A stretch of 64,000 nt of DNA from Phaeosaccion multiseriatum (GCA_965112735.1 OZ218953.1:3844001-3908000); one strand, 5' to 3'; counted from the first letter of the stretch, positions 17,345 to 53,662 are shown. Numbers and translations: made by a program. Notes: a model not told the origin generated them from the letters alone.

Positions 17345-17584
17345 TGCAAACCACTTCCTCTCCTTCTATTTACGACTCTTCTTGTGCAATGCTTCCCAGC
17401 AGCATGCGTCAAAAGCAGCAACCACGAAGAACAGTGTTCACCATCCCCTTTCCCCTTTCTTGCAGCAGCGTGCTGCTTGCTCTGCGTAAAGTTGTCGTCC
17501 AGTACATTTTCGGCTCAAGGGATTTTCGGTTACACCTTCTTGGCCTCAAAAAAACGCTCGATCTCTTGCTTTGATACATGTAAC

Positions 17585-17835
17585 CTCGGCCCTGGAAGAG
17601 GTTATCAGATTACTGATTACTGCCGGCGCCAGCCGGCCTGATTACTGATTATGGCGCCAGCCGGGCCTGATTACTGATTATGGCCGGCGCCAGCCGGGTC
17701 TGATTACTGATTATGACCGGCGCCAGCCGGCCTGATTATGACGGGCGCTAGCCGGCCTGATTACTGATTATTGGCGCCAGCCGGCCTGATTACTGATTAT
17801 GACCGGCGCACACTGTAACCTCTTCCAGGGCCGAG
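17585..17835. mobile_element. MITE-like element A: 20-bp perfect TIRs, ~7 internal 25-33-bp tandem units, flanking direct repeat
   Basis: CTCGGCCCTGGAAGAGGTTA (17585-17604) is the exact reverse complement of TAACCTCTTCCAGGGCCGAG (17816-17835). TAAC flanks both sides (17581-84, 17836-39); this could also be read as a 6-bp GTAACC. The interior consists of GATTACTGATTA-[T/TGAC/CTGC..]-GGCGCCAGCCGGCCT units. Confidence 0.85.
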
Positions 17836-17901
17836 TAACCCGGCCGTACATCCTCTTCATTAGTTAAAGTCAACACGACAACGGGGCGTTGCTCACTCCA
17901 A

Positions 17902-20788
17902 TCAAGACTCCATGGCGCTACTCTCCCGCATCGACGTGCCCAAGGGGCGGTAATACTCGGATTGTCCCTGCCCCTGGCTCTGCCTCTGCTGCCCGCTCCG
18001 TCGGGACCGCCGCGGCTCGTCGTCTTCGAGCTCCGGCTCCACCACTGCCTGTGCCAAAAGCTCCGGCTGTAGATACGCGCGATAGGCGTCCACGCCCACC
18101 GGGAAGTCGCGCTTGCGTTGGTAATCCAACGTGGCGGCAATCTCCAGAGGGAGGGTCTCTGAAGCGGGCTCGTACACGTCGCGCTGCCGCACCTTGAACA
18201 CCCAAGTGGCGATGATGGCGGCGCCCACCACTCCCGCCTGCGCGTAGCCTTCCTTGAGCAGCAAGATGCCAATCATGGTGCCTTGCGCGATGAGCACCGC
18301 GAACACCACCCGCCGGAACACCTACACCAGCCGCAGCAACAGCCACAGCAGCAGCAGCGCAGCAGCACACCAGTACACCAGCAGCACAACAATGGGGATG
18401 AGGAGATGAGGAGATGAGGAGAGTCGTAAAAATCAGCACACGAAGGGGGTGAGGGGAGTGGTAATACAAACAGTCGAATGTGAAGGGAAAGAGAAGAGAC
18501 CAAGAGGCGGACGGACCTTTGGGAAGAAGCGACCCCCGGTTTCGAAAATAGGCTCGTACACATACAGCATCTGGTGCTTGTACGTTAGGTAGGCGCAGAG
18601 GAAGTAGGGGATGGCCACCACGAGGATGAAGGGGTTCACGCAGGCGTATGTCAAGGTCACCACCGCCACGAGCAGGTCTTGCGCGTAGTACTTATCACCG
18701 GGGGGGGAGGGAGGGAGGGAGGGAGGGAGGGAGGGAGGGAGGCAACGTAACGTCGTTAGAACTGCCACCATCCAAAGACTGGATGAGAGCGGACCACGCG
18801 TGCTCCTCCACGAGTACTTATGTGTGACACACTTCACACTTCAACAAGACCCATCCACTCCACTCAGCAGTCTTTGCGCCTCCCTCTCCCTTCCCCCATC
18901 CTATCCGTCTCGGGCTTATGCCATTGGCCGCCCCCCCCCCCCCCCCAATCCTGAGCCTATCATCGACGGACCTTGGGGTAGTTGAACCAGCCGGCGTCAA
19001 AGTAGGGCCTGATGCCCATCAGAACGTGCTTCCTGTGGCGAGGCGTGTCTTGCGGCGCCACACACAGGAGGATGTAATGCTGTATCAGTCGAGCGAAGCC
19101 AGTCAGCTCCATCCTGAGAGAGCCAGCCGTCAACAGATGAAACAGTGCACACAGGATGAGGTGAGCAAGGGGGAGAGAGGCGAATAAACACTTGTTGGAG
19201 ACAGTTTCATGTCGGGACGGAGAAGGCTGCTTTCCATGTCCACGAGAAAGGAAGGCCACAGCAGAGGCCAGGAAATGGGCAAGGTGTGGATGGAGTGCGA
19301 TTGGAGTGACTCGGTTCGTTAACTCACTCACCACAAGTCCTTTTAACTCACTCATCACAAGCCCCGTTAACTCACTCACCACAAGCCCGACAGCCCCTTG
19401 ATGAGGATGTACTCCGTGAAGAAGCCGCACATCTTGGGCAGAGACTCGCCGAGTAGTGTGAATGTCTTCTTCGGGTCCTGCGAGAGACACCGCCGCAGCG
19501 CACACACGCAGAGAGAGAAAGACGGGGGAGAGAGAGACGCGATTTGAGAGGAGGCCACGGGAGAGGCAGAACAACCAACCAATCCATTTAGTCTCGCAAG
19601 CTCAAGGAGTGAGCTATTTGAAGTTGAAAGCATCCTCAGGCACAGACACACCGGACGCTCAATGCCCCTCCACGGTCATCTGGTGCCATCATCCCCCTCT
19701 TTTGTTGGGAGGCACACCTCCCACTTGCCACCCACCCACCCACGTACCTTGACAATCTCCGAAATGCAGTCAAAAACAGATCCCGCGGCTGTGAGCAAGA
19801 GGGCGGCAGAGCGAGGGTGGAGAAGCACAGAAGGTCGCGACAGACAGTCGTGTTAGAGGAGTGTCAGTTTCGTACGAGCGAAAGAGCTTCTAAAACGAGA
19901 GAAACAACAAAAACGCTCTCCCACTCTTCTACTCCTCCTTCCGGAAACGATATGCTCTGTTCGGCGCTCTGCGATGTCCATCGCTCACTCACTTGTCGTT
20001 ACAAGAAAGACGTTGATGACCTGAGGGTAGTAGCGAGGATAGAGAGGGGGGGGGGGCACACGATACAGATTGCGCCCACAATGAGAGGACGGGCAGGCAC
20101 AGCAGGTTGGACACTCTTCTCCCTCCCTCATGTACTCCATCCACTAACTCACAGATGGCAGACTCTCTGCGGGCCACTTTTCTCCCCCCCTCTCTCCCTT
20201 CTTAGCGAGCCCGAGGCAGACGGCCGTACATCCACTCACTAACCTGGAAGGCAAAGTAGCGACTGAGGGCAAGCAGTTGGTTCTCCGACTCTGACTTGCA
20301 GCCTTGCGCAATGCCCAGTACGCGGATCATGGGCGGAACGGTGGCCATGAGGGCAAGCAGCGCCATCGGCTGCAGTGAAGACACCAACGCAGAGAAGAGC
20401 GACGACTCCTCGCAGAGGTTGGCCACCCAGTCGTAGCGGGACTCAAGAGCCGCCTGAGACAGAATGAGGTACAGCAGCTGCAAGGGAGGGGAGAGGAGGG
20501 GAGGGAAGGGCGGGCGGCGGAGGAGGGATGGGAGGGAGGTCCCGGCGGCGGAGGAGAGGAGGGCAGGTTAAAGGCAGAAGCGTGGGGGTGGGGGGTACAG
20601 GGGGCAGGGGGCAGGGTACCCCAAGAATGGGCACGGAGCAAGCACTTGAGTCAGTCAGGGACGCTCAAGTAAAGGGCTGTCGTCCTTACCGTGACGGGCA
20701 CAACGTAGAAGACGAAGATGAAGCCGAGGACGATGTCCACAGTCACTCGGCGCCTGCAAGTATATGTTTGTAGGAGCGTGTGTGTGAG

Positions 20789-20847
<59 letters not shown>

Positions 20848-22276
20848 GGCAGCAGATGAAAACACGTGTGCGGGGGAGGGGGCAACCGAGGCAAGCTGCA
20901 TTCAAAGCGAAGAATACTCCTCAACCGCACACACATACACATACCCTCCTCCTGCGAGGGCCTTGTCCTGTCTTCAGTGCGGACCCCCTCCTCCCACCCC
21001 ACCGCCCACTCACAGCCCATTCACTGCCCCACTCACTACTTCCCCATTTACTGCTCCACTCACGACTACCCCATTCACTGCCGCACGGCCGCACTCACCC
21101 CGCCCTTGTCCCCTTGGTGATGTATATATTCTCCCAATACACGTCTCGCGGCTCGGGGGCGTCCACGGCGGCGAATCTCCCTGGGGCCGCCCCGTGATGC
21201 ACCTGCAGAGAGGAGAGAGAGAGCGAAGAGAGAGAGAAAGACACTGCACTGTGAGAGGGGAGGTAGCAGAGCAGAGCAGGACAGAGGAGAGCAAAACTCA
21301 CGCAGAAGCATCTCTTAGGATGCTCACCCTGACCCTGGCCCTGACCCTGACCCTGACCCTGGCCCTGCGTCTGATCCTGGCCCTGACCTGCTGTGCGATG
21401 GTGGCCGGGGTGTAGGTCCTGAAGGTGACGAAGGCCTTGGTGGCCATGAGCGGGGCCGCCACCTCGGGAGCGGGGCGAGCTGACTCGCGCTGACGCTTGT
21501 TAGATGGGGGGGCGCCATCGGCCGAGTCGGGCTTGTTGGCGGGGAGCAGAGCTGCCTCTCTCGGGCTGGGCAGGGCAGGGCAGGCCAGGCCAGGGCAGGG
21601 CAGGCCAGGGCAGCAACAAACAAGCCGAGAGCAGGCAGGTACGAGCAAGGTACGAGCGAGGGGGGAGGAGTGAGTTAGTGAGTTACGTCCATAAGTGAGG
21701 GGTGCGAGGAAGGGGGCTCTAGGAGAAGGGATGGAGAACGATGGAAAAATCAGGAATCGTAGAGAGGAGGAGTGAGGAACCAACCAACCCACCCACCGAC
21801 TCACTCACTCACTCACTCACTTGTGGTTTTCCAAGGCAGAGCTCTCGGTAATGCCTACGGCGAGGTGAGGGGATGGAAACGAGGCAGCGGTGCAGGAAGA
21901 GCAAGCGGGCACAAAGGCTTAGGGGCGAGCCAGCGGGCGTAACGGGCACACAAACGACGGCGAGCAAGGCCCTCTAGCGGCATGAAAACGATGCATGAAC
22001 GAACAGCCCACCCGCCTCACCCCCTACCTCTGTGCACTGTCCATGCCATGCTGGCGAGGCGATCCATGAAGCCGCTTCCGCCCCGTGGAGGAGCGACAGA
22101 GGGCTCAACGTCCTCCTCGTCGTCATCGGGCAAGCCCCCTCCGTGGTGCGGACGAGCACCGGCGGGGGGCGTTGGCTGCCTCCAGTCTTCGTCTATGTCT
22201 CCCTTTTCTTCGGCGTCGTTGCCCTCGCTGAGGGAATCCCCCTCCTTGCGGTGACTCAGACGCTGAGGCAACAAGC

Positions 22277-22307
<31 letters not shown>

Positions 22308-24086
22308 TGTGGAGACGGACAGGTGAGGACACGTGGACTACCCACGAGAAGGAAGGAAGGACGCGGAAAGCAGCAACCCCACAAGACAAGACACGGATAG
22401 CCCGCCCACATACAAGTCAAACGCCCTCCTTGCCTTCCCTCACCTGCGCATACATCTCTACAGGGCCTGTTTTGCCCGAGACGGTCCAATCCTCGGGCAG
22501 AGGAGGATCCAGCTCCACCACCGCACCACCCCCCTGCTCCACAATCTTTGTCGTGAAGAGAGGCATGACAACGTGCTTGTCCTTCAACTCAAGGAAGCGC
22601 CGCTTCCTCGCCTGCTGCCCGCCGATCTGCGTGTTGAGAGCCGCCAGCTCGCCGGCGTACTGCTCCACCCGGGTGTCGAGGGCCGCTTGACGCGCGTCCC
22701 TGTCGCCGCTGCCCAGGGCCCTGCAGCACAGCCGGTTGTAGAGGCCTCTTCGCGGACCTCTGGCTTGGGCCACGAGGCAGCTCTCCAGCTTGTCCACCAC
22801 GGACTCGCGCTCCGCAATGAGCTTAGCAAGGTCCTTGAGATCCTGCAGGGCAAAGCGCAGGGTGGAGGGGGAGGGGGGAGGGTGAGGGGTGATGGTCAGA
22901 GCACAGCGAGTACAGAGGAAAGGGAGTGACCAAGAACCATCGAAGGGGAATAACGACAAAAGAGTGCACTCCAAGAGGGTCCAAGGCCACTTACTTGCGC
23001 GCATGACACGCTGAGCACGCTGTTGTTGTAGAGGACGTCGAAGTAAGCCTTGAGCTTGGCGTTGCTGCGCATACTGCTCGGCACGTCCTCCACCAAGATG
23101 GTGCGCATGTGAGCAGCGCCCAGCTTGAGGTATTGGTGTCGCAGGCGGCAGTAGGTGCGAAACTCGCCGTTGAGGAAGTAGAAGGTGATGAAGGTGAGTA
23201 GCCATGTGCCCACGACGGGGGCCCAGAGCCGCGGACTGCCCGGTTTGATGTTGGACATGGACATTCGAGAGAAACTGTTGCGAGGGGGGTGTTCGACGAA
23301 CCAGACCGACATGATGTGAGGGAGGGGCAGAGGATAGTCCGCGTACACAGGGAGATTTGAGCAACATGAGGAAACTCTCTCTCTCTCGCGGGCGCGCTTT
23401 GTCATTGTGGCCCGGCACGCACCTGTTGATACTGTCCGACGACTGGTAGTAGTTGCTCGTGACGTTGATGGGGAGGATGACAAGCAAGCAAAAGGGTGCA
23501 ACGGCTGCCGATATTTTGCAGCACAGCACGTAGAATCGAATGTACAGCAGCGCGTCGAATCCGGCGTACTCCAAAAACTCAGACTCGGGCATGCGAATCA
23601 GGTGCCATATCCACAAGAAGGGCCCTGGAGACAAGACGAAGGGGGGAGGCGGACGAAGGAGGAAGAGGCAAGCGGGGACATGAGCGATCTGAGTGTCCCA
23701 ACATGTGTCTCGATTTCTTCTCCCTCTCAGCTGTCACAGCGATGGCTCGTGCGCTCTCTCCCAACCTCCGAGCAACTTTTCTTTACCACCCCTTTGACCC
23801 CCCCCCCACCCTATAATGGGGTAGAAAGTACCCTCCTCTCCTCCCTCCTTAGTCTCCTCGTTACCAAGCCCTCACCTCTTTGCGGGGGGGGTAGACTCGG
23901 GGGCTTCAAAGCTCTCTTTGGGGAAAAGTAGTCCACCTCTTTCCATCGTTTTACGGTGAAGTAAATGAAGAACACAGCGACGACAGCCGCATTGGCCGCG
24001 GCAACGTAGCCGATCTCATCGAATCCCTCATTCTCAGTCTCGCTAAAGGCCTCCGCATCCACGAGCCAGGACGGAATCCAGCCCAT
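17902..24086 (-). CDS. CSC1/OSCA/TMEM63 (ERD4-like) mechano/osmo-sensitive calcium-permeable channel
   Basis: Hallmark segments: N-terminal TM + YFSPK; AGFDALLYIRF..LPINVT; SMSNIKPGSPRLWA; RTILVEDVP; AFVTF; APEPRDVYWENI; YAQDLLV..TYACVNPFILV..YLTYKHQMLYVYEPIFETGGRFFP. Spliced across about 14 exons. Confidence 0.92.
19320..19392 (-). repeat. Three ~24-bp tandem copies of an exon end plus 5' splice site
   Basis: Minus strand: GGGCTTGTG|gtgagtgagttaac ggggcttgtgatgagtgagttaa aaggacttgtggtgagtgagttaac. Confidence 0.85.
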
Positions 24087-24444
24087 GACTGCAGTGGGCA
24101 GCCTCCTTTGGAGGAGGTTTACAAATCAGCCAAACAGGTCCCTCGCCGCGCTTTCTTTGCAGCGGCCCCTGCTCCGACTTTTTCTGCTGCTGCTTATATT
24201 GCTGCTTCTTCCTCTACCTCTCCTTCCCCGGGCTAGCGGCAGAGGGTCGCGCGGAAGGAATAGTAACGATTTGGAGGAGAGAAAGGTTGGGCAACCGCCG
24301 AGGGCACCCAAGTGCATGCGGGTGGAGCCAAAATTCTTGGCTGAGCCGAAAGAGGGCGACAAACAATAAACGGGAAGGGGGGGGCGAGGATGCCTTAAGC
24401 TTGACGAGAAGAAGTAGCTCTTCTACGTGAAGGCGGCAGAAGCC

Positions 24445-25364
24445 ATGCACACGGATCACAAGCATCTGTTCGTTCGGGGTAAGATTTCCTTCCTTTTTTT
24501 TTGCTTGCACTTGCAGCCCTCTGCTCTTTAACGGCACCGATCGATTGACCGTAAATGGACACGTATCGTCTCACCTTGCTCTCCTCGCTGGAATGTGCTA
24601 CTTTTCCGATGCATTATTTATGTGGCCGAACAAACCTCGCCGTTGAGACTTTAATCCTAACTCAGGGCCTCCTCCCTCTCTTTGTAGGCTTGCGGGCCTA
24701 CGCACAGGCCATGAGCACTCGCCACTTTGATACTGACCGTCGGCAGATCGGCCTCAAGACGTTGGTGACCATCGCCTTGTCTGAGGGCCCTGTGTACACC
24801 CACAGGGCAGCGAGGCAGCTAGACGGGGTTGGAGAAGCGATGGAGGATGTCCTTAAGCAGATTGGAGCTGAACGCAGGTACTCTCTCGAACCTCACGTCC
24901 GGCCTGGCGCGTTCTCCTCCGCGGCTGTCGCTCTATTGGTTGCCCTACTGAACTTCACGGAGGAGAATGGTGGGGTGGGAGCTGGGAAGCAGGTGTACAT
25001 GGGGCAGAGGGGCCTTCTCGAAGCAACAGAACGCATCTACGAGGCTCGCTTCAGCGATCTCGTTAAGGACCCTCAGCCGGGCCAGGCCCGGGCGGGCTGC
25101 GTGAGCTTTGACCAACTCTCGATCCTCACGAGTCGCGGTCTCACCAAGAAGCGTTCAGTGAAGAAATCGCCTGTGTACGAGCTTCTCCCGAAAGGCGCAA
25201 CAGTGGCGCGAAGAATGAAGATGAGTGCCGGACAGCCTCTCGTGACTGGGCGCATCATTGAGGGCTTCGCCGACGCTGCTGCTGCTGCTGCGGCATTTGC
25301 ACTCAGAGGCGATGCTCCTGGGGGGGCACCCCTGCAACAGCACCAGCACCACCACCAGCACCAA

Positions 25365-25395
<31 letters not shown>

Positions 25396-28300
25396 GGCAG
25401 CGGCAGCGCATTGAGGGACCGCGTGGCCGTTATCGCGACCACAATCGCTACGAAGTCGTGCTGCAGATTGACGATCGGGAGGTGGGTGGGGGGGGTGGGG
25501 GGAGGGCAGTGCTTTATAATACCCACAACACATACTCGGAGCTTTGTGCCATCTGTGTTTTCATTGCGCATGCGTCCATCTCCCCATCTCCCATCCATTG
25601 CCATCCACACCCACACGCACACAATGCCATCCACACACTCACATCCACACGCTCCCATCCACTGCCATCCACTCTCAGCGCGGGGGGGAGCGTCACCACC
25701 TCCACGACTTGGGAGCCGTTTACCGGCAGGAGAACATCAACTTCGAAATGGCCAAACTAGGCGTGGGGGACTATCGCTGGATCATTCGGGAGACCCACTC
25801 ACGGCGGCCCGTTCTGAGGCTGCCTCTCGTGGTCGAGCGTAAGAGCCGTGTTGGTGCGTTTCTGGATCACTCCCCGCTTTCGTCGGAGCACTACGCACAA
25901 CTCTCTAACTGCCCCTCTTATCTTGCTGCTTGCTCTGGTGTGTTCCTTCCCTTGTTCTTCGCAGATGTAGCCGAAAGTCTGATTGATGGGAGATGGAATC
26001 GCCAGAAAGTGGAAATGGTACAGATGGGCTACGACATCGAGAAGGAAGCGCTGGAGGAGTGTAAGCTGCGCTATCTGATTGAAGGTGACCCTCGCCGTGC
26101 CAATCGCTTCCGGTGCAACTGTGGAAGAGGCTGCTTTGTGAGGTGTGGCCCTACCCAACCCACCGACACCGATGTGAACGAGGCCGTGGCGGGGCTCAAG
26201 GACGAGGGCTTTCAGGTGGCCACCACCCTCACCCTTCACGGAACGGCCAGGTACATGGCCAACGCCACCCGAGAGCTCGAGATTGCTTGGATCGGTGAGA
26301 GAGTCCCTCCTCCCCAGCCGGTGCATGCAGCTCCACTCGCTGCCGGAGAGGCCGTACGAGGCCGTGCCGTACTTTCTCCTGCAGGAGCTGCAGCTTTGGC
26401 CAGGGAAAATGCTGCTGCCGCTGCCGCTGCCGCTGCCAATGCAAATGCCGATGCAGGCGTTGCTGTTGGCGTGGGGGCGGGCACAAGGGGTGGGAGACAA
26501 GCCGCGGGGAGGGGGGGAGCGGCCGTTCGACCCCCGCCGCGCCCGCAGGTAACACCTGCCCGGGCTACTGCTGCACCTACTCGTGCTCCTGCCCCTGCCT
26601 CTTCCCGTGCCGGAGCGCATCGGGCTATGCCCGCAGGTGCTGTGGCGGCAGGAGGAGCAGCGAGAGAAGTGCACGTGCAAGATCTTTGTTCGTCGAGCGA
26701 CGAGGAGGAGGAGATTGTGCCAGTCACGCAAGATGCGTCCTTGAGACAAGGCAGGACTGGAGAGGCGGGAGATGGAAGTGACACGGATCTCGACTTGATG
26801 GGTGACGACGACGACGAGAACGAGGTGGAGGAGGAGGAGGATGGAGGAGAGCAAGGAGGGGGACCCAGGGCCGGGGCCGGAGCCGGGGCCGCTGACCCAC
26901 CAGACTTTGTGGACGTCGTGGACATGATTAGCGATGATGACACGACACAACCGCCGAAAGGCGCTCGCTCCGCTGGATCTAAAGGTACAGAACAGGAAGC
27001 GAGAGGGGCGGCGAGCTCTCCTGCGGCGGCGGCAGCAATGGAGGGAGGTGTTGGCAAGGCCGGGCATGAGGTGATCGAGCTCAGCGACAGTGATGAGGAC
27101 GATGTCGGTTTCGTGGGTGCTCCGCCTCTAGCCGCTGCTGCTCCTGCTGCTCCTGCTGCTCCTGCTGCTGCTGCTGCTGTTACCGCTGCTCCTGCTGATT
27201 TTGTAGATGACAGTGACGAGGAGTTTGCTGCCCTGGTCGCGACCACAACTTCCTTTCGACACAAGAGGCCACGGGAGGGAGACGGAGAGGCGGGCGGGCG
27301 GCGGGCAAGAGAAGGGGAAGACTTGCCGCCAATGGAAAGACAGGAGAGGGAGCAGGGAGGAGGGGATCTTCGTGATGCTGGCCAGCAGCAGCAGCAGCAG
27401 CAACACGAGGAAGAGGAGGAGGAGGAGGAGGAGGAGGAGGAGGAGGAGGAGGAGGAGGCGGTTCGTCGTCCGATGAAAGTTAAGGATCTCAAGGCGGTAC
27501 TCAAAGCCTGTGACCTGCGCACATCTGGCAACAAAGCAGAACTGTTGGCACGGTGGGGGCGGATGGAGAGTAACGCGACCGTTCCAGAGGATCACGTGGG
27601 TGGTAGGAGGAGAGCTGAAGCAGCCGCAGCCGGGCATGACGCTGCAGGGGCTGGTGCTGCGGCCGGACCCCCTCCACCTCCGCGCGTCACAGTCGCGAGC
27701 CTGAAAGCCGAGTGCGCAGCGAGGGGCGAGATAACGAGTGGCAACAAGGCTGAGCTCGAAGAGCGCCTCTTACTGCCTCGAAGGCCGCAGCTGCTTGTGG
27801 ATCGAGCCTTGGCCAACCCTAAGCTCTATGTGCCGAGGGACCGCTCCTGCCTGTTTGCCTTGCTCTGCGTGTTCGACCGAGAGGCCAGGAAGGCTCCTCC
27901 CAGGCTGGCCTTCACCAAACAGGAGCTCATCGTCATGTCTGAGGCCAGTGGCATTTTGAGTGAGGTGAGAGGGCCTTGACGCTTGAAAGGTTGAAATGTT
28001 CTCCTTCGGACTCCTTCGGAGTTGTGGTAACCGTATTCACCTCTTATGTTTGTGCCCCGCCTGGCGCCGCTCCTTCTTTTTCTCAGGACAACTCCATGTT
28101 CCCCAGGGAAGAGAACCCTCACTATGACGGGTGGTCCCTCGCCAACAAGAATCTGCTCGCCTCCACTGTGACTGAGGCCTCGCTCATGGCTAGGATTGGC
28201 CGCCAACGACCTGCCAGGTGAGCGCCCCTCCTCCCCAGTCCCACGTGCCACTTGCCACGCGTGCACTGATACTCAAACTCTCTCGTACAAGTGCTGCATC

Positions 28301-28496
28301 TTCTCAAGCCTCTCTCTCTGTCTCTTGTCTCCCTCTCTCTCTCTCTCTGTGACTCTTGTCTCCCCCGCCTCCCCTCACCTTTAGGTACCAGCTCACCGAT
28401 CACGCCTACGGGACGTCGGGGAGGCGGCTGGCCGAGGCCATCCACGCACACTCCCACCTCCGGGGCTTTTGCTCATGTGCATACCCCCCTCCCTGA
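24445..28496 (+). CDS. Mus81-like ERCC4 structure-specific endonuclease with winged-helix, two SAP and a second winged-helix domain
   Basis: Spliced nuclease motifs VVLQIDDRE, LGVGDYRW, VVERKSRV|DVAESLIDGRWNRQK, YLIEG. N-terminal WH-like segment (SAAVALLVALL..YELLPKG). SAP motifs MKVKDLKAVLKACDLRTSGNKAELLARW and TVASLKAECAARGEITSGNKAELEERLL. C-terminal YVPRDRSCLFALL..FTKQELI..YDGWS..YQLT. Exon phases are consistent from ATG 24445 to TGA 28494-96. Confidence 0.8.
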
Positions 28497-28791
28497 GTCC
28501 CGTCCCAGCCCTCTGCTCATGTACACACACACACACACACACGCCCTCAGTCTTATCCAGCCCTCTGTTCATTCATGTACACACACACACACACACACTT
28601 AAGTCTCATCCAGCCTTCTTCTCTTATTCACATATCCACCCTCTGAGACCAGCCCCGTTTTGTAATTACGTACTTTATGCTGTGTGTGGCAAAAGGAGAG
28701 AAGAGCTGAGCGTGAGCGCAGGCTGCAAGTGTCGCCAACAACCGTTACTAACTTGAATTTTCATTGAAAAGACCCGGTTAAATGACCCTAC

Positions 28792-30304
28792 CTAACTTAC
28801 AAGACAGCTACCGTGTGCTGGCCTTTCCTTGCCCAACATCTTTGCCTCCTCCTTGAGGCCTGTCGCCAGGCTCCTGACAAGCTCCTCCTCCCCCACCATC
28901 TCAATCTCCATCTCCTCATCGAGGTTGGCCTCTTTTCGCCACTCGTACAGATGATCAAGGAATTGACCTCGATCTGCGTTGCTGAGGTACTCGATCCAAG
29001 CGTAGCCCTCTGAGGTCTGACGAGGCATGGACCAAGAGTGTGGTGTGGGGGATAGAGCCAGTCAAAAGAGGGCGACATCGAAGGGAGGGAGCAGCGGTTG
29101 CGGGGGGAAGGGGGGGGGGGAGGGCAAGGAATTTCCAATCAGTAAAGACGACGCCTACTACTACTACTGCTCCTGCTGCTACTACTGCTGCTGCCACACC
29201 TCTCACCGAGGACAACACAATGGAACAAGGGGCTTGCTTGGAATGCCCTTCCAATGCCCAAGGTACTACTTAAAGGCCTACCTATACACGCACCTGGAGA
29301 CACAAGTCCGCTCTCCTCTTGGCGACGGAGGCGCCCCCCCCAACCTCTGTAGTGTCGAAGGGCAACGAAACCACCTTAATATCCTCGGGTCTGATTCGAG
29401 AGATGACTAGGAGGTTCGAGATGAAAGCCGCCGAGGTCGACATTGGCTCAGACGTATCGGCACTCCGCGATGATGGTGGCGCCCTTGGGCTCCGTACTAG
29501 TGACGCCATCATAGCCATCGGGCCCTCCTCCTCCCCTGCTACTTGCTCCTCCCCTTCTGTGCTTCCCTTTGGTGGGGGTGGAGGAGGTGGTGGTGGCGGT
29601 GATCGTTGCGGGACCATGCTGGAGTGCCGCCTGCCCTGTCCATTCGCCCACTGCACACACGCCAAGGCGTCTGCTGCAGATCTGTGAAGTACTTCCACTA
29701 TATACAATGCCTTGTCGGTGATAAGCAGCGCGTGCCGTACCCTGGCCACCGAGTCCGAAGAGGCCGCCAATGGCCCGCTCACGTCCTTATTCCCATCAAG
29801 ACCGCCCCCTCTTGCCCCTTGATTATCCTGCTTCCGGAAGTATGTCGTGGACGAGGCAAGAGAGCTGCGTCGATACTTACCGGCCCCGGTATTACGAGGA
29901 GGGGGCGTTGCGTCCGCCTCTAGGGAAGATGTCTCCGCGGCAGTAGACGACCCGTTCGAAGGAGTTGGAGACGATATACTTGCCACGTCAATCTGTCTCA
30001 GACAGCTTGAGACGTACCCAGCTTGCCAGAGCTCTTCCTGGCTGGTGTATTCCTGGCCCCAGCCAGCGCGGAGCACGGCTTGGCGGAGCAAGGGATGACG
30101 GAAGGTCTCAAACCTCTCCTCTCCCACCTTCTCCTTTCTCTGGGAGCTCACGCTTCTTTCCAGTACCTTCTCCCACAAGCTCTGTCGCATACTATCCCTC
30201 TGCAAATTCGATGGGGACTTAGTGCCATTGATTTTGCTGCTGCCCTCCCGCCCAAGTTGCGCAGGGGGGTGGATACTATCTTCCTCCTCCTCCCTCGGCT
30301 CCTC

Positions 30305-30356
<52 letters not shown>

Positions 30357-37816: not shown

Positions 37817-37878
37817 AACGAGCCATCCGTCGACGATCTGGTTGAGGAGGACTCCACGCGAGCCTCCGGAGCAGTGAC

Positions 37879-43513: not shown

Positions 43514-43570
43514 GCCCTTCAGAACTGTTAACTTTGAGGTGTATAAACAATTCAAGGGTTGTATCTTATG

Positions 43571-43571
<1 letters not shown>

Positions 43572-43602
<31 letters not shown>

Positions 43603-44442
43603 CGCAGCTCTTTAAGCCTGGCAAGGGCCTGGGTCCGGTGCTGCAAAACCTGCTCCACGGCGGCGCTGATGTTTCTCTTCTTGGCGAGGGCCAAGTCTCG
43701 CCGTGCTTCCTCCCTGGCAATTCGCGCACGTAGCTCCCACGCGCCACTAGCTCGGCTTTTCGCCCCGCCTTGAGCTGCTGCAGGGGTACCTTCGTCTTTG
43801 TGCCGCTGGTGCTGCCCCCATGGCCATGTGTTCCCCGCCTCTAATTCGTTGCCGCTCTGCTCGTGCACACGCTGCTGCTGGTCCTGTTTGTCCTCGTCGT
43901 GCCGGTGTTGCTCCTGCCATATCCGCCCGTCTCCCGACTGCGCGCGATACGGTGGCGCAGTTTCAATGTACATTGAGCCGGCCCGTGTTGCTCGCCCCTC
44001 TCCCCGCCTCCGGCGCCTTCTCGTGCCGTTGCTGCTGCCAACACCCTTCCCAAGGCGCCCTGCCAAGTTCGACCATACCACTGCAGCGCCCTGGCTCGCC
44101 CCTTTCCAGGTTATGCCAGCCTTCTCGTCCGCCTTCTCGTCCGCCATTGCTTCATATCCAGGAGAAGCACTCGTCCCACTGCCGTCACCCGAAGCGACAC
44201 ATGTATTCCCCCACCACACCCCTATCCCCCTCATCTTGTGCATCTGACGGGACACGGATTGAAGGCGTTATGAGGGGGGCTAGGGTCTTTGTCGGGGAGG
44301 TTTCAACCACCTAGGAAAAACGTACCTGCTGCACGCGTTTGAGCTGCTGCTTCTCCTCCTTGGAAGCCGGGGGAAGAGCCGGGTCGGACAGCGCATTGTC
44401 CGATACCCAACCTGTGTCCTGCTCTCCTATATTCAATATCAT
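43572..44442 (-). CDS. Hypothetical protein with a C-terminal coiled-coil and poly-Q
   Basis: Exon MILNIGEQDTGW..KRVQQ|gtacgt, then a long exon ending ARIAREEARRDLALAKKR..QQQQ*. The start codon is uncertain. Confidence 0.45.
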
Positions 44443-44727
44443 TCTTACGCAAAAGCTGTTCCTTGCTTGATGAGATGTGCGAGGCAACCCACCCGCCACT
44501 TCACAGATGGCGAGAAGCGTATAGCCAATCCTCTTACCTTTTTTCCCTCCCGATCTCTCGATCATTTTAATCATAAAGCTTCTCCCTCTCCCTTCTCTTC
44601 CTTCTCCCTAGTACAGCCAACCCTCCTACATTTTATAAGCTCTCGCTCTCCATTCTCTTCATCTTCCTTCTCTTTCTTCTCCCTGCTCCTTTCTCCCTTC
44701 TCCTTTGAAGACCTTCCTCCCTTTCCT

Positions 44728-45901
44728 ATGAGGCGATTAGCCCTCTGCTCGCTCCGCGGGTACCCTCAGGGCTCCAGTCGGTGCCGCGGCTTCGGCGTCG
44801 AAAGAAGCCAAAGAAAAGAGATCAGCACGACGATTAAACAATGCGCATCTTCTGGCCGGATCCTTGACCCTTACATCCACCTGGACGAGGACCCGTCTCT
44901 TTTCAGCACGGAGGGCTTGAAGCTCAAAGCCTCGCGGATCCGCAGCCACGGGAAGTCCATGGTGGCTGCAGCGCACATCATGGTACGGGCAGAGGAAGTA
45001 GAAGTAGAAGCGGCCAAGAACGTTAATCCTTCATCCTTTCTCCTGTCCGACTCTTGTTTGTTTGCAGAAGTATGCCAAGGGATTCAAGGCCCAGGCATTC
45101 CCTCCCGTAGCGGAGGCGCTTTATGGCCAGGTGATGGAGGCCAATCGATTGGGCGACACCAGCCTCCTCGCTCCGGCTTGCACAGAGGGGCTCTACCAGG
45201 CCCTCAGCACCTCCTTTCTTCAACCCTCGAGACCAGCGGCGCGCGGGGTCGGGGGAGGGGGTGCATACGGTAAACGCCACAAAGGAAAGAGGAGAAGTCG
45301 TCCTACAAGTGGCCAAGGGAGTGGGGAAGGTGAGGGCGGAGGGGAGGAGAGACAGCTCGAACGTCGTACGGTGCTGCGCCTAATGGGGTTTGAGCAGAGG
45401 AGCAAGGTCTTGCAGATTCGCTACGCTTACACCACGAAAGGGGGGAGAATGACCAGCGGGCCTCTAAACAACATTGGTTGGGGACAAGTTACTTGCCAGA
45501 TCTTTTCTCGGAGGCGGAGAGTCCTTGTTGATTCGAAAGGAGAGGTGAGAGGGAGAGCGACGTACCATGGAGCTTGCAGGGAGGCTCACCCACTCTCACC
45601 CCCTCGCTCTTCTGCTGCTGCCTGTGAGTAGGAACACGAGCACGCCTTCTCGGAGGAGACTGCTGAGCTCACCAACCCCACCGTCGTGGTATTCGAGCTC
45701 GACTTTGCACGTGAGTCCCCAGCCCCCCTACCCCCCGACAAGTTACCATCAGCAGCACTCAAATCTGTCCGATTCCCTCTCTTACCACTTGTCGTGTCGC
45801 TCTCACTCGCAGGTGTGGACAGCGGGTGGAAGGTCGCGATGATGCAGGAGGTGGAGTGGACAGACAAGGATAGCCCACCCCCTGTTCATGCTCCCGCATA
45901 A
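44728..45901 (+). CDS. Mitochondrial Tim44-like-domain protein (mL45/MRPL45/Mba1-like)
   Basis: Arg-rich, acid-poor N-terminus; GRILDPY..PSLFSTEGLK; F...AEALYGQVMEA...D...L...CTE; QVTCQIFSR; VVFE..; WKV. Confidence 0.75.
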
Positions 45902-46282
45902 CGTAAAGGAGAGTATGTCTACATATATAACGAAAAAAAAAAAAAGTGAGAGGGTCTTTTCGCCCTCCTTTCTTATTTCAAGTCGCGTCTGGTGTCCCTC
46001 ACTTGTGGCCTGTCCTCGAGGGCCTCTGCTTTCGTGTGTGTGTGCAGTTCGCCCCCTTGTGCCTCCCTTTAGTTGTCCTACTTCTCTACTTCTCTCGAGT
46101 TGCTTTCCGAGTGTTTCTCAGCGATGCGGTACGAGCCACACACCGCCCTCGTCTGAGTTCCCTCTGCGCAGGTCAACACACCAAGATCCACGAGCCGAAC
46201 CCACTACCGCGTACTCTATACTTGCTCGTCTTGCGCTCAGCGATAGACGCTACTCCAGGCCTCTCTCCCTTCGCCGGACGCT

Positions 46283-49200
46283 TCATCGAAGGCCTTTGAT
46301 GAGGTCGAGGATGCCGGTGCTTTGCCCCTTCCTCTTCCCTTTCCCGCCGCTCTTCGTCCCCTTGGTCAACGTGGCCTTCCCCTTGCCCTTGCCCTTTCTC
46401 ATCTTGGGTCCATTCGCTGCCTCGCGAGAGAAGATAGCCAGGCGCTCCTTGTGCCTCTTTTGCAACAGTTTCTCGAACTGCGCATCGTCGCGCTCACATC
46501 CCTTGTGCAGCAGCTCGTCCTGTGGCGTAGAAGGGAACGAGAGCGAAATGATTAAAAGCGTGAGTAAACGGGTGCGAAACTTCTTACAAAGTCGCCAGGA
46601 GGCTGGAATACAGTCCACAGTGCGTTGTGAGCATAGATAGTAGTAGTTAGCCAATTCCAGAGGAATGGAGCAAGAGCTCGTACAGAGTTGAGGCATGTTT
46701 GACTCTTACCAGCGCGCGCTGGAGAGCTTCGGAGGCGTGGATCTTCTTGTCCATTCGATTGCGCAGAGCGGTCATGAGCTGAGTGTGGTCCTTGTGACTA
46801 CTCTCCAGCTGCGCGAGGTACGTGGGGCCGGGTGGCAGCAAAGGGGGGTTTAGGTGCGAGACGAGTATGCATTGGTGCAAAGGGAGGCTGGACAAAGATT
46901 CCCTAGCTACCAAGGTGGGCTTTGGACAGGGGGATGTGTGAAGACAAAGAACAAGAAGAAGACGGCGAAGCAAGAAGAAGAGTGATGCAACCCTTGGGGA
47001 CTAACCTGCTGCTGGGCGTTTTGCGCTTCACTGAAGAGCATTTCTCCCTGCTTGGACACGTCGGCCGCGCTCGCCTTCCAGTGGTTCACAAAGGTCTCTT
47101 TGGTTCCTCGAAGGCACTCCGACCCCTCCGCTTTGATGCTCTTCACTTTCGCTTTGACTGCCTTCCTCTTCTTCCTCTCCGCCACCGCCAGCGCAGTTTC
47201 TTTGAGGGCTGCGAACAGAACATTCAGCTCTGCCTGGCTCTCTCCTTCTTCCTCCTCTTCATCTTCTTCCTCCTCCTCTTCTCCTTCATCTTCGTCTTCA
47301 TCCTCGTCGTCGTGCTCTTCATCGTTGCCGTTTCCGTCCGACTCAGACTCTTCATCAATCTCTTCAGTGCCGCGCGACTCCTCGATGTCGTCCTCCTCCT
47401 GCCCCTCGCCTTCCTCGTCTCCTCCCGCCCCCCGCCCATGATGCTCATCGTGATCGCTCTGTTCTTCATGTCCCTCGCTCCCATCGTCCTCTCCGTCCTC
47501 CTCGTCGACCTCCTCCCTGGCTCTCTTTCGTCGACCTTCTTCCTCCTCGTGGACCCCTCCCCCCTCCTCATCATCCTCCATGTCCTCATGTTCACTCGGC
47601 ACCTCGTCCTCCTCGTCCTCCACGTGTACACTGTGTTGAGCGAAGGCTGCATCCCCATCGCGACCCTTGCGCTGCTTTCGCTGTGGTCTGCTCCTCGGCG
47701 CAGGTGCAGGGGCCTTCGGTTCCTTTGTCCTGGGCGGCGTGCTGAGTGCCTCGCTGTCGTCTCCAAAAGGTACCGGCGTCGCCGAAGGAGAGGGGGGGGA
47801 GGCCAGGCCACTATCATCATAGGCGTCTAGTGACGGGGACGGTAGAGGCTCATCCTCCATCTCGTCCTGCTCCCCCCCATGGGGAAGCCTGTTGCTCTTA
47901 CTCTTTCGGGCGCCTGCTTTGCCTCTCCCGCCGCGTGCTGGCGCTCGTGCCGCGGTGGAGTCTGTCTTGGCAGCGCGGCTCTTCTTTGGCGGTGCGCGTC
48001 TGCTGCGCTTCTCCTTCTCCGGTTCCTTCTCAGCCTCGTCTTCCTGGACCTCCTTCTGTGGACGACGCTGACGGCCTGGCGAGGATTTCATCACTGCCGC
48101 AAACGACAGCCAAACAGAAGCATTGGAACAGAAGGTTATTTCACGAATGAGGCCAGACGAATCAGTTTCGGAGAAGGACCGGCAGGATGTAAGCACTCAA
48201 GTCGGTGCGTGAGCTATGCGTGCGCTCCCTCTCTCTTCGCTCTCACCTCCTCTGCGATTCTCGTCGCGTGCTTCTCGCCCCTTGGCTCCCTTCTTCTTCT
48301 TGCCACCAGCGGGCGCAGCGTCATGCTCGTCCTCGGATCGTTCTTCTGCTGAGACAAAAGAGGGCGGGTGGGTCGAAGACATTCGCAGTCGAGTGAATGA
48401 GAGCCACGTTCAAGTTTGACCAATCCTCTTCTCAATCCTCGCAACCCAGCAAGGCTGGAGAAGCCCATTCGAGAATGAGTCCCCTCGCTCCATGGGGACC
48501 GGGCCAGTGAGCCGGAGCGGCAAGTACCTTTGCGTAGCTGCCCAACTTCGGCACCATCGAAGCCGTTCGCCTCTTCGTCGGAATCGACTCGCTGCCCCCT
48601 TCTGGCCATCCTCGCACCCGCACCTGACTTCGCGGAGGGAGTCGTAGCGCCGCTCTTGCGCGAGCTCTCACCCGCGGCTCTCCTCCCCCTCTCGTCGCCA
48701 TGCTGCTGCTCCGGCAGGTCTTGTCTGGGTGGAGCCGTCCTCTGCGCGACGATGGAAGCTCGGCGGTCTTTGCCGTACAGGTTCTCCTCCAAGGTCGCCG
48801 TGATACTCTCCAGAGAAGGATACTCGGGGGAGTGCTGAGGTGAGAGTGGCAGGGGAGGTGCAGAGCGATCGATCCTTGTAAGAAAATACAAACAGGCGTG
48901 TGGCATCTACCTCGCTCTTCGCTCCTCACCTCATCGCCGCCCCAGCCGCCGCGCGGATTGCTCAGGCGAAAAAGCAGGTCGCATGTGGTCGTTCCTGGCG
49001 GGGGTCTCGTAATGCGAGACTCCAGGGAAGGAACGTCCTTGAATGAAACCTTCACCCGTACGCCGGTGCCCCCGTCGCCGCTTTTCCCGCCGCCGTCAAT
49101 CTCCGCCTCGTAGATGGCCTACGTGTAAGAAAGAGTGCGTGTGTGAGGAGACCGACTCGTCGCAGGCAAAGGTATTCAACGAGACACAACACACACAGCC

Positions 49201-51463
49201 ACAGCTGTCCCTCGACTACTTCTCTTTCTAGACTCCTTCCCTTCCAATACTCACACTAAAAGGCACAGTCACGGCGATGGCTTCGTCCGCCGATGCGCCC
49301 ACTTCGAAGACGATGTTCCCCGCTGGAGTGGACACATCCAACCAGGACCCCTCCTGAGCAGAAAGGGAGGTGGGAACGGGCCCTGGTTACACAGTCACAC
49401 TCTCTCACACGTCGGAACGTTCTAGGATTCATGCGCGCCTGAGCAAGCAAGCTACGCACCTCTCTTAGTAACTTTGTCCTGTGCTTGTGGTCCACGGTGG
49501 GCTCCCATGTGATGACCTTCGAGTGTTGATGCAGTGGAAAGGGGGGAGCGACAGTGCCCAGAGGGCAGCAGCAGCAGAAGGGTATGAGAGGGTTGCGAGT
49601 CGACGGACAGGGGTATAGAGCAAGCAAGGTAAGAAGGGGAGTACTTTGGGGCCCTTCTGCAGCAACTCTCAACGGAGGGGCTGGCTGGAGCTGCGCCGCG
49701 CTTGCCGCCCCTGCATCAAACGCGGCCTGACGCGGGGTTGAGGAGCCTCCTAGCTAGCAGAGCAGTGGCCGTTCTGAAGCTCCGTCCCCTCAGTATTTCC
49801 ATGTGCCGAGCCTCACCTGCGATACCTCTCCCAGCTCGGCGGCTTTCACACCACGGAAGGGGTCCTGGGAAGCGCCTTGGCTAGGGTTAGGATAGAGAGA
49901 GAGAGAGAGAAACCACGCGCGCACAGAGCCGGCCGGGGGAAGCAGCGGAGTGTGGGGAAGCAGCCGCGGAAGAGGAAAGAATTAGTGCCAGAGACAGATG
50001 TAAAAGGAAGGTACGCAGCCACCTTAGGATGGCTAGCGCGGGTTCTACTCCTTCTTTCCTCCTCACATATTATTGAGCTCGGTCTGCGGCATGTTGAACA
50101 AGTTGAGAAGGTCTCTGGCATCCTCCGCAAAGTAGCCAGAGCGCAGTGACCCGAGTTTCTCTCCCAGCGGGGACGGGCACGCCTTCTCGACAGCCGTCGC
50201 GGCCGCAGCCTCCTTGCCCTGCCAAGAGCAAGAGACAGGCAGTTCGGACGGGCAAGCAGAGTAAGACAGCTAGATTCCCCCAGCCACAGTGCACCCTCGC
50301 CTACCGCGAGGCACTCACTTCTCTCCTTCCGTATTCTTTACAACTTACCTTGTACACCCACTTTTTGTGCAGGCGGTAGAGAAGCTCCAGGACCGACAGC
50401 TGCACTCGGTAGGAGGGGAGTGAGCCCACCTTCCCAGCGAGCGCCAGTATCTGTCTCTCCTCCCCTGGTGTGCCCTCGCTCCCCGCGTCGGCGTCCTGAG
50501 GGTGGTCCTGCAGCTGCTTCAATAGGATGGAGCTCAGGCCCTTAAAGTTTGGGCGCCTCCCTAGACACATGCTGAGGAGCAAAGAAGCGCAACTCTCGAC
50601 CTTGCCTGCATCCTCCTCGGGGGCGTTCAGGAGGAGGGCCATAGTAGGCTCCACTACCTCAACCCGAATGAGCTGCGCCTGAGGGGGGTGGCATTGCAAG
50701 AGGAGGAAAGAAGGAGTGAGCGACTCGCCAGCCAGGCCTGGGCACGAGCCTTGCTCTCGTGGCGACGTGCCCCTGCTGGCTGTGTGCTCACCAAAATCAA
50801 GTCAAGAAGGTTTCCCCTGTCCTGTCTAGAGAGGAGCGGAGAGACCGTGCCACACGCGTTCGCCCGGGTTACTGCAACATCCACCTGCTGCGAGCTCGTC
50901 AGGTTCGAGTCATTCTCCCCCCCCCACTCATCCTCGCTGAGGTTAAGCAGCTCCACTCCGAGCTCCACCGCGGAGGAGAAGAGTGTGTTGAAATCGGCCC
51001 GCTCATGCTGGTCGGTGGAACGGGAGACGGCCGGAGGGGCCCGCAGCATCTCATAGAGGAACTGCCCCACCCCCAACACCACCACGCGAAGCTGTCACGA
51101 CGGTTGAAGGGACGAGCAAAACATGCGCGTGGGGTAGAGAGTCATAGGCCGTCTAAGAAGGGCGTTGTGAAGGCGCTAAGGGAGGCACAAGCGTTCTTCC
51201 CCCCGATCCTTTTAGCCTCCGCAGCAGCAAGCCCCTCTTGCTGCCCTTCAGACCCTCTACGCGGAGCCCCCCTCTCTGGCGTTGTGACGCACCTTAGACG
51301 CTGGGAGCTCCTCAACATCCTCCCCAAGTCTCCGGGCAGCCTCATCTGGGCTGCGCAGCTTGTTCTGAGCGCAGATGAGCTGCATCACCGCCCGCCACTC
51401 TGCCGCGGGCAGCTTTTGCCGAATGCGAGTCATGGTGCGCCCCGCCATAGAGGACAGCACCAT
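46283..51463 (-). CDS. SYCP2/Red1/ASY3-like meiotic axis protein (ARM-like + PH-like N-terminus, acidic disordered linker, C-terminal coiled-coil)
   Basis: Successive exons encode LAGKVGSLPSYRVQLSVLELLYRL, KLGSLRSGYFAEDARDLLNLFN and EGSWLDVSTPAGNIVFEVGASADEAIAVTVPFS. These match, in order, three SYCP2 ARM-PH blocks as I recall them. An E/D-rich linker and ~170 aa of coiled-coil follow. Confidence 0.65.
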
Positions 51464-51588
51464 CTTCCCACTAAAGCAAGTAGAAGATTTGGAAATGCCG
51501 CAGCGATTGCAGAAAGAGAGAGGAGCTTTGAAAAATTTCTAACGAAAAGGGTTCCAGTCGAGAGGCCGGCCATATAATATTTGCTTCA

Positions 51589-53361
51589 TCAGAACCTTCT
51601 CGCCCTCTTCTTGAAGCGCTCGTACGCGATGTGGTCAGTACTCATTTGTGGACCCCGCCCACCCGCCCCGCCCCTCCCCCCCCCCCGCCCCCCCCCTCTA
51701 CCATCTCCACCCCCTCCTCCCCGCCCGGGCCCAGGAGGGAGCCCCACCCCCGGTGCCTGCGGTGCGGGCCTGCCTTGCCCCTGTCCGTCTCTGCCCCCTC
51801 TTTGTCCTCCTCGGCCATAGTCCCCTCTCCCTCCCCCACCGCCGCCCCTGCCGCCGCCTCCACGCCCCGTCGTCCCCCTCCTCTCCGCCTGGCGCTCGTT
51901 CTCTCCCTTGAACATCTCCTTCAGCTCGATGGCCCTGTCTCGGGAGTGTTTGCTGTAGTTGGCGGCCAGCGACCCCATGACCACATTCTCGCCTCTCAAG
52001 CGCGCGTTCTCCATCCTCTGAATTCGCCGCTTCTCTTCCAGTGCCTGGTACGCACGCACGCAAAGATTCGACCGACAAGAGGAGAAGCGAAGGCAGGGAA
52101 AGGTTGATTGGAAGAGAGAGAAATAGTGCTGACGAGGTGTTGGACCAGACGAGCACGAGTAGTTTCATCTTTTCCAAAGCATTGTACGTCAGCCAGTAAA
52201 CACACTGCTGAAGAGGAGGGCAAGACAAGCAAGAGAGGAAGAGGTATCGAAGGGGAGAGCGGAGCGGAACCTACTCACCCTCGTTGCCTCCCTCGTCGCC
52301 TCCATATTCTTTATTCTAAAATCCATGGGAAGTGCCACTTCTGCAATACCTGCTCCGAATCAGTCGACGATGAAAGGGGGGGGGGGGGCAATGGTCGATG
52401 AGGAGGAGGTGGAACAGAAAGCGCGAGTACGGTGGACACAAACAAGACACCACAAGAGAAAGGGATAGAACTCGTCCCTTCCCACCAGCATCGCCTCTCC
52501 CTGGCCCCTGCGGCTCGGACGCATCCCAAGCCGCCACAGCCTCCATCCCGAGGTGACCTCACCTGTACCAAAGGCTATTTGAGCCCCCGAGCCCACTTCT
52601 CCGTCCATGGCTGCCTGCTCTGCTGCCGCCTTCTGACTCTCCGCCAACCTGTCCCGAAACTCCTCCGGAATGAGGTAGAGCTCGTCCTCCTCAGTCATGA
52701 GCTGCTTCTTGGTAGCCTCTATGCCTCCGCCCTTCTTGTCCTCCTCCGCCTGCTTCATGCCCATCTGCTCCTTCACGTAGGCCTCCATGAGCTTGTCATG
52801 CGACATGCCCGCGCTCCCCGTTGCCCCGAGCCCAGCCCCTGCGTCGAAGTGGCTGCCCAGCTGCTTCCCGACTCCGCCCTCCAGTCCACCCCCCCGCTTC
52901 GTTAATGGTCCTGCCTCCCCATCTGCTCCTGCCTCCTCCTCGCCCCCTTTCCCTTTCCCCTTTTGCCCTTTCCCGCCGCCTGATCCTACAGCCAGCAAGT
53001 CCCGTGCTCCCATGCCCTTGCTCCTTCTCCTTAGCATCTGTTCTTCCCGTAGGTCGGCAAGCACCGCCGCGCTGATTCCCTCGTCCTCCCCCTCCTCCTC
53101 CTCCTCCTCTCCTCCTCCCTTCCTCTCGCCATCGGCCTCCTCTTTACTCCCATTCCCCTCCACACCGCCATTCTCCTCCCCCTCCCCACCGCCACCAGTA
53201 CTACTCGCAGTAACCCCCCCTTTCCTGCTGTCTTCTTCTTTGCCAACTCCCGTAGCTGATGAAGTGGACTCCTCCCTCTTCTTGGATCTAAATTGCTTCT
53301 TCGCCCCACCCTTCTTCTTCTTGAACGTCACAACGGGGACCTCTTCTCCCTCCTCCTCCAT
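51589..53361 (-). CDS. C9orf78/Tls1 (HCA59) spliceosome-associated protein
   Basis: LREEQMLRRRSKG; DKLMEAYVKEQM; EDELYLIPE; G|IAEVALPMDFRIKNMEAT; AANY; terminal STDHIAYERFKKRARRF*. Confidence 0.88.
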
Positions 53362-53481
53362 AGTACTAACGATCAAGCAATAGGACCGAGGTAGGGAGGG
53401 AGAGAGGAGAGGAGAGGAAAGGGGTTTGCCCCCTCACAGGTGTCCTTACTGAAATTGAAATTTTTCGCTTTCACCTTCCTT

Positions 53482-53619
53482 GGTCGACCCCTGACACGCT
53501 ATCCCCGATAGCGGATAGCGCGCCGGCTGGCGCCGGCGATAGCGGATAGCGCCGGCCGGCGATAGCGGATAGCGCACCGACTGGCGCCGGGATAGCGGAT
53601 AGCGTGTCAGGGGTCGACC
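53482..53619. mobile_element. MITE-like element B: 23-bp perfect inverted ends, four internal GATAGCGGATAGCG units
   Basis: GGTCGACCCCTGACACGCTATCC (53482-53504) is the exact reverse complement of 53597-53619. The outer GGTCGACC is palindromic, so it could instead be an 8-bp (or 6-bp GTCGAC) TSD. Confidence 0.8.
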
Positions 53620-53662
53620 TTGAAACCTTCTTCTCCCCCCTTTTCTTCTATTTTTACTGACA

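Follow-up and report, generated by a model that had tools for sequence, protein, structure and literature searches.

Within a 64,000-nucleotide stretch of DNA from the alga Phaeosaccion multiseriatum (GCA_965112735.1 OZ218953.1:3844001-3908000; hereafter the window), two short elements bounded by terminal inverted repeats (TIRs) – here called A and B – lie in short gaps (~300-560 bp) between minus-strand genes, in opposite orientations relative to those neighbouring genes. Judged by their sequences, A and B are miniature transposons of the cut-and-paste type that are related to each other and have been active recently. They share an exact 16-bp core, GCCGGCGCCAGCCGGC, which stands on the plus strand in A (17622-17637) and, as the reverse complement, on the minus strand in B (53522-53537). 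The shared core had been noticed when the window was read from its sequence alone, together with two further features: the alternation of a doubled heptamer with a GC core in both interiors (CTGATTA-CTGATTA in A and GATAGCG-GATAGCG in B), and the position of both elements some 120-240 bp upstream of a putative minus-strand ATG. All three observations of this sequence-only reading hold, the distances to the ATG being 241 bp for A and 122 bp for B.

Element A is 249 bp long (17586-17834), its true ends having been set by comparing copies. Its inverted arms (17585-17604 and 17816-17835) are 20 nt long and 100% complementary, and the outermost base of the arm belongs to a 6-bp target site duplication (TSD), GTAACC, rather than to the TIR. 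The left TIR, TCGGCCCTGGAAGAGGTTA (17586-17604, plus strand), forms a perfect inverted repeat with the right one (17816-17834, minus strand), which was placed from the inverted repeat and the boundary comparison, and GTAACC stands immediately outside them, at 17580-17585 and, as an exact copy, at 17835-17840. The space between the TIRs is filled by an array (17605-17815, plus strand) of CTGATTA-CTGATTA and GC core units with a tandem period of 29 bp, to which Tandem Repeats Finder assigns 6.7 copies over 17608-17809. This window copy equals the 287-bp master form of its family minus one 32-bp unit and one heptamer. The ATG nearest to its start (17344) opens the putative first exon (17189-17344, minus strand; an ATG-initiated open reading frame, ORF) of an EF-hand gene, whose exon structure is putative and whose EF-hand domains match in a downstream exon. 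The other end of A lies 67 bp beyond the stop codon (17902) of a channel gene of the RSN1_7TM (OSCA/CSC1-like) type, with its last coding exon at 17902-18321 (minus strand) and the RSN1_7TM match (E = 2e-17) in the adjoining upstream exon (ORF 18433-18837).

Element B has its true ends at 53484 and 53617, with the TIR TCGACCCCTGACACGCTATC; the left TIR, TCGACCCCTGACACGCTATCC, occupies 53484-53504 (plus strand, identified as an inverted repeat) and the right one, placed as in A, 53597-53617 (minus strand), and the perfect inverted arms run over 53482-53514 and 53587-53619. The flanking hexamers, CCTTGG (53478-53483) and CCTTGA (53618-53623), match at five of six positions. Inside, the array (53505-53596, minus strand) consists of four GATAGCG doublets; of the three cores between them, one is full, one collapsed and one degenerate. 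The gene that starts downstream of B has its ATG at 53361 and its first exon at 52360-53361 (minus strand), an ORF with a sub-threshold match to Hep_59 (E = 5.5e-4; 21 bits against a cut-off of 22.7 bits). On the other side, B ends 45 bp past the stop codon (53663) of the next gene, whose last ORF (53663-53917, minus strand) gave no match in a Pfam search.

Comparison with other genomic copies settles where the elements begin: directly ahead of TCGG in A one base varies among copies, as do two bases ahead of TCGA in B, and the elements therefore start at 17586 and 53484. Their TIRs, which had at first been taken to be unrelated, prove to be homologous. Both start with TCGRCCC and share TCGRCCC..TG.A; of 20 positions, 10 are identical, and a series of families (A', D, C, F and H) leads stepwise from one to the other. 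Genome-wide pattern searches, with the reversed patterns as controls, returned 118 matches to the A-type TIR (control, 0) and 191 to the B-type TIR (control, 0), corresponding to ~59 and ~95 elements, and 689 matches to the generic terminus TCGRCCCCTGAYA (control, 2). A perfect 6-bp TSD flanks 34 of 58 distinct elements sampled, and 40 of them have one with at most one mismatch, compared with 2 of 58 at the shifted positions that served as a control; no target consensus was found among the duplicated hexamers of the same 58 elements. The lineage has the termini TCGRCCC...GGGYCGA and makes 6-bp TSDs, and its copies number roughly 450. Its miniature members, 91-466 bp long and without a match in Rfam, combine TIRs and a TSD of fixed length with small size, the absence of coding sequence and many near-identical copies, as do MITEs, the miniature transposable elements with inverted repeats, and the modular, multicopy, non-autonomous family that had been postulated for A and B is supported.

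Nine full copies of family A (287 or 288 bp) have a mean pairwise identity of 98.5%. Unit-sized deletions and duplications are frequent in families A and B, and one case dates such a change relative to insertion. In an 8-kb tandem segmental duplication with flanks that are 95.5-98.5% identical (L044, C1:658826-661848; L045, C1:666857-669879), one B insertion is present twice with the identical target hexamer, as a 242-bp form with five cores and as a 185-bp form with three; as copies of a single insertion, they show that array length changes after insertion.

Unpaired TIR matches were considered as possible ends of long elements, and all of those followed up (L010, L016, L019, L034, L040, L048 and L060) turned out to be truncated miniature copies. 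A stretch of 2.07 kb at G000:C1:4724852-4726926 is bounded by a pair of TCGGCCCCTGACA termini that face inward, the left of which has a C-type core just within it; the pair could be a mid-sized element or a composite. Six loci (L002, L019, L034, L040, L047 and L080) have, no more than a few hundred bases from their miniature elements, a separate repeated block of ~50 bp (GCGCCTTCCTGGGTCGGCTCAACCGCGGAGC...), which at L080 directly follows a TCGACCCCTGACA terminus.

The internal units of the lineage follow one order – heptamer, heptamer, 0-2 bases, core – and are 28-33 bp long, with core-to-core spacings peaking at 28-29 bp and 32-33 bp. At least eight heptamer variants occur with the one common core: CTGATTA in family A, CGCTATC (in the other register, CCGCTAT) in B, CTGCTTC in C, CAGGTTC in D, CTGCTAT in F, CAGCTAT in G, CTGCTAC in H and GTGCTAT in a large element described below. 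The skeleton CNGNTNN accommodates all the variants, with 1-4 substitutions between any two. Each family's heptamer, with its first base changed, also forms positions 13-19 of the family's own TIR, right after the conserved terminal block TCGRCCCCTGAC. Within the master copy of family A, the eight heptamer doublets carry a single mismatch in 112 positions, compared with 14 edits from the 16-mer in the 112 positions of the seven cores (Fisher p = 0.0007), of which only the central GGCGCYAGCCGG is constant. The recurrence in the TIR and the difference in constraint support the proposal, already made in the sequence-only reading, that each family has a recognition site of its own in its doubled heptamer.

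The core itself was followed from the window to the whole genome. In the window, GCCGGCGCCAGCCGGC has four matches at up to two mismatches, where shuffled sequences lead one to expect 0.12; in the genome, the 16-mer occurs 761 times (reversed control, 0), and 391 of these cores are immediately followed by an SHGVTWH heptamer, for which chance would account at a rate of ~0.7%. We read the context of the first 30 exact matches on contig 1, which fall at 17 sites. All 17 adjoin family heptamers inside elements of the lineage; a TCGRCCC-type terminus lies within 250 bp of 29 of the 30 matches (16 of the 17 sites), the element at the remaining site having degenerate ends; and none of the 17 is a free-standing promoter motif. 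Single-copy elements, or a 16-mer without ties to TIR-bounded arrays, had been named as grounds for refuting the original proposal; the genome scans show the elements to be multicopy and the 16-mer to be tied to such arrays. Structurally, the core consists of two GCCGGC palindromes with centres 10 bp apart, and its central GGCGCCAGCCGG is identical across at least eight heptamer families.

The same core occurs in a much larger, protein-coding element, a probable relative. A six-frame search of the genome with a PHD model gave seven matches with the identical score of 50.4 bits (C3:503395, C3:609152, C4:4900206, C8:349475, C8:3455209, C13:327704 and C16:2004275). All seven have the core followed by GTGCTAT, a pattern with 38 exact matches in the genome, in two or three units that repeat in tandem every 31 bp at a distance of 330-460 bp from the PHD match, and at six of the seven one further unit lies ~8.2 kb away in the same orientation. 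A pattern search also showed that each of the seven loci carries TCGACCCCTGAC-GTGCTAT-TATGCTAT-CTGCTAT-C and then the core, and the terminal 12-mer of this element is that of the miniature families B, F and H. These near-end termini begin at C3:502946 (+), C3:609698 (-), C4:4900752 (-), C8:349057 (+), C8:3455755 (-), C13:327255 (+) and C16:2003857 (+). The PHD-encoding element, ~8.4 kb long and present in seven copies, is the probable coding partner of the miniature elements; if so, the PHD-bearing copies would end in an inverted TCGACCCC terminus ~8.4 kb from the near end. A coding partner sharing the termini had been named as something to look for, and the search has produced this candidate for the B-type end, with its core arrays, and none with an A-type end.

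Two further PHD matches share the lower score of 41.5 bits (G000:C3:3069398-3073734 and C12:258509), and one of them lies 4.2 kb from a pair of D-type units (core plus CAGGTTC); the two may represent a second coding family, or a coincidence. A search for NHL repeats gave four matches, with no termini or cores of the lineage in the three loci read.

Taken together, A and B are probably young subfamilies of one non-autonomous cut-and-paste lineage, whose arrays would correspond to the subterminal cis region of a parent transposon, multiplied in the miniature forms. This reading draws on the co-occurrence of the terminal 12-mer, the heptamers and the core units in the PHD element, which makes the arrays appear as the subterminal cis-acting region of that parent; and since the core stands at the ends of a protein-coding transposon, it is itself most likely part of the transposon machinery rather than a host promoter or insulator signal. 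The miniature elements would then be deletion derivatives of the parent in which subterminal units have been multiplied. An element-encoded protein would bind the heptamers, which would determine its specificity; the invariant core would serve as a second, lineage-wide binding site or as a phasing spacer, and additional units might give a miniature copy a competitive edge in recruiting transposition proteins.

The sequence-only reading had instead cast the core as the binding site of a host factor, which would make the elements portable promoter or insulator cassettes that persist in, or target, short intergenic gaps. Such a role might seem attractive for a core that is CpG-rich and partly palindromic, in elements whose window copies lie 122-241 bp upstream of putative starts in gaps as short as those described above, the more so as an element of family H (L056) lies ~240 bp upstream of an ATG-initiated ORF. 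These gene-proximal cases, however, number just three; every sampled core site falls within an element of the lineage, and cores also occupy the subterminal arrays of the coding ~8.4-kb element; A and B face opposite ways relative to their flanking genes; and the TSDs lack a consensus. We therefore regard a host cassette as very improbable, and our sequence analyses of this genome yielded nothing to indicate that the core acts as a host-factor site, promoter or insulator. That A and B stand between closely spaced genes is explained most simply by the tolerance of insertions at such places in a genome dense with genes. Of the reconstructed empty sites, 28% are spanned by an open frame of 200 codons or more, compared with 48% of nearby random positions (p = 0.003), which fits the avoidance of exons and is silent on transcription starts; the proxy is a weak one, 93% of random positions lying in some frame of at least 100 codons. 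Codon-position GC was tried as a coding detector and set aside as too inconsistent here to place elements relative to exons. Insertion sites showed no preference for simple repeats (12%, compared with 11% at nearby random positions). Four copies of family A (L006, L007, L018 and L019) lie in or beside long (GGGA)n-type arrays.

Several observations weigh against a parent-derived subterminal region with an essential core. In short B-type elements at three loci (L050, L057 and L082), the core has collapsed to GCCGGCGC by deletion between its two GCCGGC halves, and the element at L082 has a perfect TSD; the array at L052 pairs doubled CAGCTAT with a spacer other than the GC core; family E has a similar terminus and no core (L042 and L086); and no coding element bearing either the end TCGGCCCTGGAAG of the A type or CTGATTA heptamers was found, though family A is young. 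The full core may thus be dispensable for the elements. The collapsed cores, the alternative spacer and the coreless family E also favour an alternative in which only the termini and heptamers matter for movement and the core is a functionless spacer, inherited from an ancestor and homogenised by tandem duplication or unequal exchange, as do the variation of core edges among units of one element whose heptamers are constant and the post-insertion shift in array length (242 compared with 185 bp). Under neutral descent, however, the core would be expected to have diverged no less than the TIRs and heptamers. The identity of GGCGCCAGCCGG in at least eight families, which differ among themselves in up to 10 of the 20 positions of the TIR and in 1-4 of the 7 of the heptamer, counts against such a spacer, and exchange within arrays is unable to homogenise sequences across families; we consider this alternative unlikely.

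At two of these loci there is more to be seen. The L052 array (~1300-1735 of the locus; G000:C2:4021606-4024628) is a ~36-bp minisatellite of doubled CAGCTAT and the spacer TGATGTGYGCCAATAGCG, beside the end of a G-type element. Family E elements are ~530 bp long, with the TIR TCGGCCCCGTGCACGCCTAGCGGCCTAGG and many GGCCTAG motifs (L086, 1576-2576; L042, 1678-2208), and at L086 a B copy and a truncated A copy are nested within one.

It is also conceivable that the core acts through DNA structure, aiding the synapsis of ends or driving the expansion and contraction of arrays. As single-stranded DNA, a 22-nt stretch around the core folds into a hairpin of -8.5 kcal/mol (z = -2.7 compared with shuffles), with a 6-bp GC stem and a 4-nt loop that can form on either strand, and the frequent unit-sized deletions and duplications in both families would suit such a role. 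For segments of two units, by contrast, folding does not surpass that of shuffled sequences (z = -1.3 to -1.9); in the family A master, several units are without the left arm (TGGCGCCAGCCGG) and can form no hairpin; and so short a hairpin is weak in duplex DNA, all of which makes a structural role of the core extremely doubtful.

Under the reading preferred here – a non-autonomous lineage carrying the subterminal region of its parent – the elements join a kind of transposon that is already known, as MITEs with subterminal repeats of binding sites are not a new category. Many copies of short recognition motifs are found inside the ends of Ac/Ds (hAT) and En/Spm (CACTA), and in En/Spm and PIF/Harbinger two proteins divide the work, one recognising the subterminal motifs and the other cutting. 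Ac/Ds and En/Spm resemble the present lineage in having repeated short motifs within their ends, and differ from it in their termini, TSD length and the heptamer-heptamer-core unit. In Arabidopsis, Lemi1 proteins bind the TIR and, cooperatively, the subterminal repeats of the Emigrant MITE, and internal sites were proposed by the authors of that work to limit which transposase moves which MITE (PMC1636448). Emigrant, with its pogo-like Lemi1, is like our lineage a miniature inverted-repeat element with a TIR motif repeated subterminally; here, however, long and regular arrays fill the element and a variable doubled heptamer is combined with the invariant 16-bp core, the TSD is 6 bp rather than TA, with termini TCG...CGA, and binding to the repeats is predicted from their sequence. 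Another parallel is provided by Tetris and DAIBAM of Drosophila virilis, non-autonomous TIR elements in which the number of internal tandem repeats varies and both families have terminal sequence in common, probably moved by one autonomous partner (PMC4079207). The Tetris repeats are ~220 bp long, form part of long TIRs and have given rise to satellite DNA; the units here are ~30 bp long and run in one direction through the element, and, in contrast to Tetris, we saw no kilobase-scale satellite of them in this genome.

The ends alone cannot settle the superfamily. Besides its 31-bp TIRs, the P element has separate binding sites in its interior, and hAT termini usually start with YARNG, which those of this lineage do not. 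P and hAT elements typically make TSDs of ~8 bp (PMC3706591); the 6-bp TSD here and the failure of the P-element models PF21787 and PF12017 to find a match in a six-frame search of the genome speak against the P superfamily. The hAT6 group is defined by 6-bp TSDs (PMC12730594), a length the lineage shares; the C-terminal dimerisation domain of hAT transposases (PF05699), however, matches the genome at just two places, the 3-kb loci of which contain no TCGRCCCYTG termini, and hAT was set aside despite the TSD. IS3EU/GingerRoot elements also make 6-bp TSDs and have TA..TA (TAYGG..CCRTA) termini (PMC12730594, PMC10045372), so that TSD length fits and the ends TCG...CGA do not. Dada elements, which have TSDs of 6-7 bp and no TIRs and insert into small-RNA genes (PMC3706591), are equally unsuitable for a lineage with TIRs of 19-21 bp and no target consensus. 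The known groups with 6-bp TSDs are hAT6, IS3EU/GingerRoot, Dada and Polinton (PMC12730594, PMC10045372, PMC3706591); none of the four fits TCG...CGA, and a literature search for a superfamily combining 6-bp TSDs with TCG ends found no match. We tentatively raise the possibility of an undescribed group of DNA transposons, with TCG...CGA ends, 6-bp TSDs and a PHD-bearing element, in which a diversifying heptamer would set the subfamily that is moved and a second conserved protein or domain would recognise an invariant core whose two half-sites (GCCGGC) are spaced by one helical turn. If this were true, a core that stays constant as its heptamers take eight or more forms would offer a natural series for studying the splitting of transposase specificity and the competition among miniature copies.

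What is new in this lineage is the invariance of the core across subfamilies, with the genome-wide statistics that go with it; the link between the heptamer of the TIR and that of the array; the difference in constraint between heptamer and core; and the core arrays at the ends of seven coding copies. Hundreds of miniature elements are linked to a probable coding partner by a signature that can be counted – terminal 12-mer, heptamer and core – and the recognition region, one part of which varies by subfamily as another stays fixed, lends itself to binding and mobilisation experiments. For annotation, it follows that GC-rich repeat blocks near gene starts in this alga are to be labelled as transposon ends, and not as regulatory cassettes unless expression data say so.

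A metagenome scan for two cores 12-18 bp apart gave one match, on the GC-rich, bacterial-looking contig Ga0209570_1000061, which we judged to be unrelated. The two copies of the 16-mer on it (L093, 3797-3845) are 17 bp apart and lie ~110 bp before a possible start codon; the pair looks like an unrelated direct repeat of the operator type. Elsewhere in the window, an (AGGGG)n purine/pyrimidine microsatellite block of ~85 copies occupies 5742-6207 and a (CTCC/CTCT)n block 14949-15236, among many further simple repeats.

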